This document shows positions 1,493-4,400 of a stretch of 64,000 nt of DNA, piece after piece. A model generated the notes under the pieces. The model made no database searches. It had not been told where the DNA came from and saw only the letters and a list, made by a program, of their open reading frames with translations. A program made the translations under genes and the position numbers. The number at the start of each line of letters is the position of its first letter. The stretch's first letter is position 1. This stretch comes from Salpingoeca rosetta (lineage: Eukaryota; Protista; Choanoflagellata). Location: assembly GCA_033442325.1 (NCBI GenBank), contig JAWQFM010000005.1, positions 2,047,665 through 2,111,664 of the forward strand, in the 5' to 3' direction.

Positions 1493-4400
1493 CTAAGGCC
1501 GTCGCGTGGCCAGCACAAAGGTCCAAGTGCCCGTGTTGGGATCATACGACTCGTGTACCGTGCCTGGAGTAGTCTCCAGTCGGTGTAGCAGCTGCTCACG
1601 ATCCTCGCCCGGACGCTCACGCACCCCACGGACCCTCACGCGAATACGACACCAGTACAAGCCTTGCGGTAGGTGCGGGAAGCCGTCCTCCGCACTTCCG
1701 CGCAGCTGCACAAGCAGATTCAACACCTCATACCGGAAATGCATGGGGAACCACACGCATAAGTCTTCGCCAGAATACACGCAAATCTCGGTGGAGGAGA
1801 TGGCCACACGTGCGTCACGCGGCACAAAGCGATTCGGCCGTGAGAACAAGTCCTCAACATCCAAAGGACTTCCTGCTTCCAGCGCATCGTGGCCGCGCCC
1901 GTCCTCCGTCACGGCACTGCCCACTCCCTCAACTGCAATCCCAGCTCCATCATCAGTATCATCAGCATCATCAGCATCATCGCCATGGTGGTTAGCATCG
2001 TCATCACCGAGTTCAGTGCCGCCACGAATGCGTGCGGCGCTGTTGTCTCGACGCCAGGAGCTGCTGTCGCCGAATCTCGGAGAGGCGTGTTCTTCCTCGA
2101 TGCTGTTTGCACTTCTCGTTCCATGCCGTAGTCGCGGCTCGTGCTCTCGGTGCCGTCGAAACACAGGAGCCCCCTCGCTGTTCCAGTTCGGGCCCAGCGC
2201 AGACTGATGCTGCTGGCCCGCGGTCGTAGGGACACCAGCTCCTGTCAAAGTGTGGCTCCACGTGAACCCTGACACATGCACCGGGGACGGTACAGGCGTT
2301 GGTATGCGCGCTATGGCCGCCGTTTGCCCTCGGGCTGACCGCGGCTGCCGTGGCCGGTGAGCACGCCTCGGCTGACGCCGCCAAAACGAGGATGAGGCAT
2401 GGGCATGCACCGCATACTCGCTTCGCGCGTCGTCATCTGTTTCGGTCGTTTCTCCGTCGTGGTCGCTTGAAGGCGGTCGAAACAGCACCACATGCCGCCC
2501 GTCCAGCAGCTGGTCCTCCTCACGTGCATGGTGTGTGCCGATGTTGGGTGGCATGGGTGGCAGGTCAGGCGAGCGCTCCGCTTGGCCGTGGCGCTCAAGC
2601 ACCGCCACCACATGGGACGCGCTGGTCTCCGTGCTGATCGTGCTTACACTGCGGTAGCTGTCCGTGTTGCGAATGAAGCTTGACGTGGTCGTCACCATGC
2701 TTTCGTAGCTGTCACTTGAGCTGACCGAGGGGGCGAGCGCCGCCACCATCCGCGCACGTCGCTCCGCAATATCAACCGCCCGGAAGCGCGCGCGCAGTTC
2801 CGCGTCAAAGCGTGCATGCCGCTCGCTCGCTGTCTCGTTGGCGACCGCGTCGTCCCTTTCTGCTCGCTCATCCACACGAATCGCCTCTTCGTAGGTTGCG
2901 AGCATCTCCTCAAGAGTCTGCGGAGGTCCAGGGTTCTCGATGAGGTCAAGGAACGCCCGGCCAATCTCAACGTCGCGTGAAACTGCCCCTTGCTGCTGCT
3001 GCTGCTGCTGTTGTTGTTGTTGTTGTTGTTGTTGTTGTTGTTGTTGTTGTTGTTGTTGTTGTTGTTGTTGTTGTTGTTGTTGTTGTTGTTGTTGTTGTTG
3101 TTGTTGTTGTTGTTGTTGTTGTTGCTGGTGATGCGGTGGTGATAGTGGCGAAGGCAGATCTCTCCATGCGTAACGGCCATCGCTCTCGCTGTCCGTTTCA
3201 CCAAACTCGGTGCCAAAGTGGTCGCGGTAGAAGCGGTCGGACCGGCGCGGGGAGTCGTTCAGGAGCGCCGCCTGCGCTGCTTGCGGCTGGGCATGCGGCC
3301 TTTCAAAGTGCTGCACCTCGGGAACATGAGGCGTGCCTTGTGGTGATTCATGTCCCGATGGCGAGAGGCTTGTGCGTCGCATGGCGCGGAGGGCGTGATC
3401 TACTGCCTGCTGATGCGCGTGCTGCTGCCACTGGTGCAGGTTAACTCCTGGAAACGCGAAATCAGTGTGCATGCGCAAGGTCGAACGCGTCGACTGAGCA
3501 GACTGCGGCAAAACCTCCAGTGCCTCTCTACTCTGCTCATGCTGGTCGTGGTGGTCCTGTTGCTGCTGGTGCGGGTGCTGGTGCGGGCGCTGGTGCCGGT
3601 GCTGATCGCGGTAGTGCTGCTGCTGCTGCTGCTGTCTCCGCTGTTGTCGCTGCTGCTGCTGGTGCTGCCGGTGACGATCGTGGTCGTCTCGTTCGTTGTT
3701 GTTGCGATATGGGGGAGGAGGAGATACGTGGGCGGGAGGCATACCTTGGTATGGCTGCCGTCGTTGCTGCTGTTGGTGCACGTTCTGGCGGTGGCGGTCG
3801 TAAGAGGGCGGGTTGGGAGGAAGAATGGCCGCCGACAGGTGGTCGTTATGCCTTTCATCCGCTTCACCCTGGCGCTGCTGGCGCTGCTGCCGCGGCCGTT
3901 CCTGTTGATCGAGGGCACGCGCTAACACCTCCAGCAGCCGGTCCATGTCGTTTTGCAGCCGCTGCAATTGCTGTTGCTGCAATTGCTGTTGCTGCACGAA
4001 TTCGTGCGGCGGAAGCGTCTCCACTGCAGCTTCCGGCGCTCCAGTCCCTTCATGGGCGGGGGCAGCATTTACGCGCCTCGCCGCCAACTCATCAAGCACG
4101 CTCGCCAGCACCTGTTCCACCGTCATGGCATCACCGCCCCACATCATGCCATCAGGCACCAGCTGTCTCTCAACCAAGGTCTGGCTCAGCTCAGCCAGCT
4201 GCAGCGAGTCCATGCCAAGGTCCTCGACAAGCCTCTCGTCCACAGATCTGGGGCGCGCGCCACCACAATACTCAATGGCATCTGCAACAGCTTCAAATGC
4301 TGCCTCAAATGATGGCGCGTCATGATGTGTGGCGCTCAATTCAACGGTGCCACCTCCCCCAAGTGACTGTTCCCCTTGTCGCTGCTGCTGGTGCTGCTGG

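Follow-up and report, generated by a model that had tools for sequence, protein, structure and literature searches.

The stretch of DNA analyzed here (the window; 64,000 nucleotides, positions 2,047,665 to 2,111,664 of contig JAWQFM010000005.1, GenBank assembly GCA_033442325.1) derives from the choanoflagellate Salpingoeca rosetta and carries, on its minus strand, a gene for a modular polyketide synthase (PKS) whose C-terminal tail is the subject of this report. PKS assembly lines usually end in a thioesterase (TE), reductase (R), condensation (C), or short docking element. The tail of the S. rosetta protein is assigned here to the peptidase S59 family, the members of which are known from nucleoporins of the Nup98 type.

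The list of open reading frames and its translation present the gene as a single unbroken open reading frame (ORF) of 5957 aa (Table 1). Pfam searches with overlapping pieces of the protein returned four ketosynthase (KS), five acyl carrier protein (ACP), two ketoreductase (KR), and one dehydratase (DH) domains, with no match to an integrated acyltransferase (AT; PF00698, E ≤ 0.01) and none to the release domains TE, R, or C (PF00975, PF07993, PF00668). With several KS-ACP modules, reductive domains, and no integrated AT, the predicted protein fits a trans-AT type I modular PKS. The long ORFs in the 64-kb window include neither a stand-alone AT nor a stand-alone TE. An initial annotation of this DNA had described both the end of the ORF and the lack of a TE, R, or C domain, and the translation and Pfam bear it out on each; the span of the tail (window 1496–1870) agrees with the one given there.

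The C-terminal tail and its match to peptidase S59

Searched on its own, the tail matched a single Pfam family, PF04096 (Nucleoporin2, the Nup98-96 autopeptidase S59; E 0.004–0.006, 17.2–17.8 bits), over profile positions 102–139 of 148. The HMMER comparison with the S59 family that the initial annotation had called for held in that PF04096 was the sole match, but the tail alone did not reach the gathering score of the family (28.4 bits). A phmmer search of the PDB matched the tail to C. thermophilum Nup145N in its autoproteolytic domain (APD; E 0.001); the 33 residues aligned over the last helix and the ESYDP.TG.W.F hairpin include ~16 identities. For the 123-aa domain alone, language-model features placed PF04096 clusters at the top (0.96; 202 of 256 features in common; 17 of 30 matches), while a piece of 150 aa that extended into the acidic linker gave nothing useful (0.80). 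A word search for full-length proteins with the same tail found none, and the tail had no Pfam match to the docking-domain families of PKSs or nonribosomal peptide synthetases (NRPSs).

The same phmmer search of the PDB also matched designed Kelch proteins and KLHL12 to a 14-residue motif of the tail. The designed proteins scored nominally better than Nup145N, though only by summing six copies of that motif, and no single Kelch stretch in the PDB passed alone. A Kelch propeller, which consists of 5–7 blades of ~50 aa each, was ruled out for the tail, which has one YDP.TG.W motif and no repeats; no Kelch family was found in it by Pfam at E ≤ 10.

An orthologue in Salpingoeca infusionum

A word search with the KS4-ACP5 region of the S. 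rosetta PKS returned mostly bacterial and apicomplexan PKSs (37–49% identity). Among the matches, one protein of 4289 aa carried a precomputed PF04096 domain: P0097 of EukProt EP00049_Salpingoeca_infusionum, a transcriptome ORF marked ‘complete’. P0097 is colinear with the S. rosetta PKS (KS1; ACP-KS2-DH; KR-ACP-KS3-KR-ACP; KS4-ACP5; identity up to 58%), and AT, TE, R, and C domains were likewise not found in it by Pfam. At its C-terminus, PF04096 lies above the gathering score, with 29.9 bits on the whole protein and 37.3 bits on the C-terminal piece (E 3.8e-9, profile positions 12–140 of 148), and the language-model features of this tail match PF04096 clusters at 0.97. In S. infusionum, one complete transcript ORF bears the PKS and the S59 domain together, with the domain beginning ~35 residues past the terminal ACP and the stop codon placed equivalently to that of S. 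rosetta. The search for orthologues proposed by the initial annotation was answered by this second protein with the same fusion. When the S. infusionum tail region was searched among proteins of 2.4–7.5 thousand aa, only the self-match was returned, and metagenome scans with the two-tail alignment and with the orthologue ACP plus S59 region gave no confirmed locus.

The two tails align colinearly in MAFFT with 26% identity, and their significant pairwise similarity is that of the last 33 residues only. A joint profile of the two tails matched the C-terminal domain of C. glabrata Nup116, the non-cleaving yeast paralogue of the Nup98 family, in a single stretch (E 2e-7; profile 12–137 against chain 18–153), as well as Nup145N (E 8e-7) and Nup98 (E 0.014). 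Each of these was better than what either tail achieved alone, whether for Nup116 (E 1.4–1.8 for S. rosetta; 3e-6 for the orthologue, in both domain halves), for Nup145N (E 0.001 and 0.12, respectively), or for Nup98. Since the joint profile outperforms each single tail, both sequences hold a consistent S59 signal.

By MAFFT and HMMER, the Y.SP.LD.L motif with which the domain starts is matched by ‘SPLDVEDL…’ of the S. rosetta tail, and the first beta-hairpin by ‘…EICVYSGEDL’. The domain would therefore be complete without a 30-aa insertion, with some uncertainty left in the N-terminal register. The initial annotation had set VAISSTEICVYSGE against the V.VY strand, which is probably wrong, as both methods put the stretch in the first beta-hairpin. 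Judged by the joint profile, the tail is homologous to the solved APDs over the full length of the domain.

As read off the Nup145N alignment, the His-Phe-Ser positions are Thr-Arg-Arg in S. rosetta and Thr-Ser-Ala in S. infusionum, and both ORFs stop 1–3 residues past the equivalent of the Nup98 cleavage site. With the catalytic His-Phe-Ser gone in both tails, neither can be an autopeptidase. The proposal of the initial annotation, a catalytically dead S59/Nup98-type domain at the C-terminus of a PKS, is supported by the above-threshold PF04096 match of the orthologue, by the joint profile, and by the missing His-Phe-Ser. At the level of sequence, the fusion is confirmed as real and common to two choanoflagellates, and the identity of the tail as S59.

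Predicted structure of the tail

An AlphaFold2 model built with the two-sequence alignment (pLDDT 53, pTM 0.48) has an order of strands and helices compatible with an APD. In a Foldseek search against the PDB, the Nup145N APD occupied ranks 2–5 with a probability of 0.93–0.99 over only 62–68 aligned columns. The three nearest shapes in the ESM Atlas were all PF04096 clusters (TM 0.45–0.46), and in a wide VIA-align search the S59 chains had the highest sequence identities in the list. These low-confidence models point weakly in the same direction as the sequence, toward an APD fold.

Terminal ACP, linker, and 3′ end

The region between KS4 and the stop codon is laid out in Table 1. The terminal ACP (ACP5) falls below its Pfam cut-off (PP-binding, 17.8 bits compared to 20.8) and lines up with the terminal ACP of the S. 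infusionum orthologue. The linker that follows is 15% Gln and has no real Pfam family. As the spacer of the orthologue is only ~35 aa, the 735-aa linker of S. rosetta is a lineage-specific expansion. The (CAA)n(CAG)n microsatellite within it likely varies in length between strains. Pfam matches of the linker to VPS13_N and DUF5481 were discarded as polyQ/low-complexity artefacts far under threshold, and an FG-nucleoporin region was ruled out (three FG and zero GLFG). Past the stop codon, the 3′ untranslated region opens with a long (GT)n tract and then meets the 100-N gap (1285–1502).

Table 1. Positions of the PKS gene, its C-terminal features, and its neighbors in the window
Feature	Positions	Strand	Details
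Whole ORF	1493..19366	-	N-terminal region without family, then ACP-KS-ACP-KS-DH-KR-ACP-KS-KR-ACP-KS-ACP-linker-S59
KS4, last ketosynthase	4718..5803	-	Pfam; Cys and both His motifs kept
Terminal ACP (ACP5)	4082..4309	-	Phosphopantetheine Ser in GMDSL, aa 5051-5055
Low-complexity Q/R/H-rich linker, ~735 aa	1871..4081	-	~aa 5096 to 5832, between ACP5 and S59-like domain
46-Gln run	2990..3127	-	Pure (CAA)n(CAG)n microsatellite, 138 nt
S59 / Nup98-APD-like C-terminal domain	1496..1870	-	aa 5833-5957, 125 aa
Stop codon TAG	1495-1493	-	Followed directly by (GT)n tract
Assembly gap, 100 N	1285-1384		108 nt past PKS stop
TauD/TfdA-family dioxygenase ORF	21542-22312	+	E 1.5e-24
GH130 family, C-terminal part	129-650	+	Cut by window start

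Other features of the synthase and its neighborhood

Several further features of the PKS and of the genes around it were recorded. The catalytic motifs of KS2–KS4 and every ACP serine are intact. In KS1, both His motifs are retained and the active-site Cys is replaced by Ser (DTASSSS; aa 971, window 16454–16456), a position at which the S. infusionum orthologue still has Cys (DTACSSS). The S. rosetta KS1 may act in loading, without condensation or by decarboxylation, or may display an early sign of decay. KS3 shares with KS2 a 300-nt tract of 91% identity (8388–8687 and 13266–13565) that encodes a long identical protein run around HGTGT…GHTE. The tract looks like inter-module gene conversion of the GRINS type, and GRINS have been reported for choanoflagellate PKSs (PMC10394414).

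At the other end of the gene, the first 640 aa match no Pfam family and show no alignment with the S. infusionum orthologue. The first ATG of the ORF lies within a CA-type repeat translated as HTHTHT (window 19300–19366), and the true start codon may be further inward, for example the Met at ~aa 20. On the opposite strand, ~2.2 kb ahead of the PKS start, lies an ORF for an Fe(II)/2-oxoglutarate dioxygenase of the TauD/TfdA family, which could be a candidate tailoring enzyme in a two-gene cluster with the PKS. Convergent with the 3′ end of the PKS is the C-terminal part of a GH130 protein (beta-mannoside phosphorylase family).

Evidence against the S59 reading and alternative explanations

The last 125 residues of the S. 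rosetta PKS are probably a diverged, non-cleaving homologue of the Nup98/Nup145N/Nup116 APD and a putative docking or tethering module, on a bacterial-type PKS that would have gained its S59 domain inside the choanoflagellate lineage. A number of observations weigh against this. On its own, the tail stays under the PF04096 gathering score (17.8 compared to 28.4 bits), with the strong match confined to its last ~35 residues, and the likeness of the two tails to one another is weak, with a local score that was reached by 7 of 3000 shuffles. The AlphaFold and Foldseek comparison suggested by the initial annotation returned the Nup145N APD, but with Foldseek E-values of 0.04–0.08 and low model confidence, at pLDDT 53 for the two-sequence model and 39 for an unusable single-sequence model of the last 200 aa; the S59 chains in the VIA-align search have Z-scores within noise (3.7–3.9). 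The fusion was found in one other PKS, with no third protein in the protein or metagenome searches, and an exhaustive phmmer search through 1.84 billion representatives with the tail (170 aa) returned zero relatives and did not find the S. rosetta protein either. As the S. rosetta protein itself is missing among these representatives, no public predicted protein holds the tail, and the public gene model at the PKS locus is probably missing, split, or truncated. Two further points concern function. The K/R-loop region, by which Nup98 is anchored to NUP88, aligns ambiguously and the loop is apparently shortened or missing in the orthologue, and the function of the tail is purely inferred.

The main rival explanation is that the tail is a true S59 homologue that has become a functionless, decaying relic behind a runaway low-complexity expansion in S. 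rosetta. Compared to the tail of S. infusionum, that of S. rosetta has diverged much further from the family (37.3 and 17.8 bits, respectively), it stands behind an inserted linker of 735 aa that contains a pure microsatellite of 46 codons, the confidence of its structure models is low, and the loss of the active-site Cys of KS1 could mean that the whole gene is drifting. However, the main frame is open across the ~860 codons of linker and tail, whereas the other frames there are open for no more than 174 aa, and the GC content at the three codon positions follows an equal pattern in the tail (0.65/0.47/0.66) and in the catalytic part (0.68/0.50/0.68). The language-model features still place the tail in S59, the motifs of KS2–KS4 and all ACP serines are intact, and the position of the stop is kept in both species, such that a relic appears unlikely. 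The same open frame, in which tail and PKS are joined without a break, also speaks against the tail being absent from the mature PKS as a result of an intron, an alternative 3′ end, a separate transcript, or misassembly at the (CAA)n repeat. A set of 20 public runs from nine studies, several of which are small sets of contigs presumed to represent RNA (the kinds of all runs are guesses), contain 97–98% of the sampled 31-letter words of positions 1496–4495, and the complete transcript ORF of S. infusionum has both PKS and S59. The word coverage is only suggestive of an expressed and contiguous tail, as words of 31 letters cannot span the pure repeat of 138 nt and leave contiguity across it unproven; the nearness of the assembly gap to the stop and the lack of any public library protein with the tail, the organism's own model included, are in favor of a separate tail. 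On balance, an origin of the tail outside of the mature protein is improbable.

It is very improbable that the likeness to S59 is due to chance, with an unrelated beta-rich or Kelch-like segment happening to hold a YDP.TG.W motif. Such a coincidence would fit with the matches of designed Kelch proteins and KLHL12 to the 14-residue motif, with the sub-threshold score of the tail in Pfam, and with a VIA-align result in which S59 is not separable from noise. The Kelch matches, however, are sums of six weak repeats, compared to one copy and no room for a propeller in the tail, while the S59 match spans 33 residues alone and the whole domain in the joint profile. Further, the orthologue passes the Pfam threshold at the same position, and features and shapes from the ESM Atlas both rank PF04096 first. 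Least probable of all is that the S59-derived domain is itself the release catalyst and, by acyl-shift chemistry, frees the chain from the ACP as a thioesterase would. The domain does occupy the place of a TE, which in S. infusionum is right behind the last ACP, and neither protein has a TE, R, or C domain, but the His and Ser of S59 are missing in both species and a disordered spacer of 735 aa separates ACP and domain in S. rosetta. Action on thioesters is not known for any S59 member.

A putative docking or tethering module

The non-cleaving S59 homologue favored here would most likely serve as a C-terminal protein-docking or tethering module, and the docking or localization role that the initial annotation had raised as a possibility is plausible. 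An APD without catalytic residues is left with a binding surface, and the domain occupies the site that follows the last ACP, for which reasons the docking or tethering reading is preferred. PKS subunits carry a release domain or docking element right after their last ACP (PMC9113145). The APD of NUP98/Nup145N/Nup116 binds the NUP88/Nup82 beta-propeller by loop exchange, in which the K/R loop of the APD is exchanged and a hydrophobic groove takes the FGL loop of the propeller (bioRxiv 10.1101/2021.10.26.465790).

In the scheme proposed, a bacterial-type PKS would have acquired an S59 domain within the choanoflagellate lineage, and the domain would have lost self-cleavage while keeping the capacity to bind a partner through the hydrophobic groove and loop exchange. 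The S59 tail may then bring in a partner acting in trans (the next synthase, an AT, or a release enzyme), which a synthase with neither AT nor TE must need, or alternatively may tether the enzyme to the nuclear pore on its cytoplasmic side. In S. rosetta, the flexible Q-rich linker of 735 aa would give the domain a long reach. The apparently short K/R loop of the orthologue argues mildly against canonical Nup88 binding. It is a tentative suggestion, and one that may well not hold, that eukaryotic assembly-line synthases have recruited the S59/APD fold to form a new C-terminal docking/targeting class, one that would either grip the N-terminal peptide of a trans partner or anchor at the pore via the Nup88/Nup82 propeller.

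Comparison with known systems

Among nucleoporins, the C-terminal domain of yeast Nup116/Nup100 is homologous to the S. rosetta tail by profile and, like it, stands at the extreme C-terminus behind a long disordered region, ends near the Nup98 cleavage site, and has no working His-Phe-Ser. It differs in its host, which in S. rosetta is a PKS, and in the region upstream, which in S. rosetta is Q-rich with three FG and no GLFG; the S. rosetta tail is also very diverged and sub-threshold in Pfam. The APD of Nup98-Nup96/Nup145 has the C-terminal helix and beta-hairpin (…L…ESYDP.TG.W.F…) in common with the tail, which in contrast lacks both the His-Phe-Ser and a downstream Nup96-like polypeptide.

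The trans-AT PKSs of bacteria share the multimodular arrangement of KS, ACP, KR, and DH without an integrated AT, and assembly lines from bacteria and apicomplexans are the nearest relatives of the S. rosetta KS outside of the choanoflagellates. Unlike the bacterial systems, the choanoflagellate gene has polyQ/low-complexity insertions and no terminal TE, R, or C, and the last domain of the S. rosetta protein is otherwise known only from nucleoporins of eukaryotes. The C-terminal docking domains of PKSs and NRPSs are comparable in their C-terminal site after an ACP and in a putative contact of moderate affinity with a partner to which the chain would be handed on. The likeness is one of functional analogy only, however, as the tail is a 125-aa domain of S59 type, whereas the known docking elements (four-helix-bundle, class 1/2, and beta-hairpin docking domains paired with short linear motifs) consist of short stretches of helix, of such linear motifs, or of a beta-hairpin domain at the N-terminus, and include none of S59 fold (PMC9113145).

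Assembly-line PKSs of choanoflagellates have been mentioned in surveys (PMC10394414). No paper was found that describes a PKS with a Nup98/S59 domain, in agreement with the initial annotation, to which no described PKS of this architecture was known, and a nucleoporin domain that ends a PKS in two choanoflagellates is apparently a new domain architecture. For S. rosetta, a probable gap in the public gene models comes to light as well.

The fusion shows how a megasynthase of bacterial type was ‘eukaryotised’ once it had entered the lineage nearest to animals, and points to unexplored product release, partner docking, or enzyme localization. The importance of the fusion hinges on the partner that is bound by the domain. 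Were the tail a docking module, pathway engineering would gain a portable and structurally new connector; were it to target the pore, a natural-product synthase would for the first time be linked to the nuclear pore complex. Should either reading be true, a module of the nuclear pore would be organizing the secondary metabolism of an organism closely related to animals.

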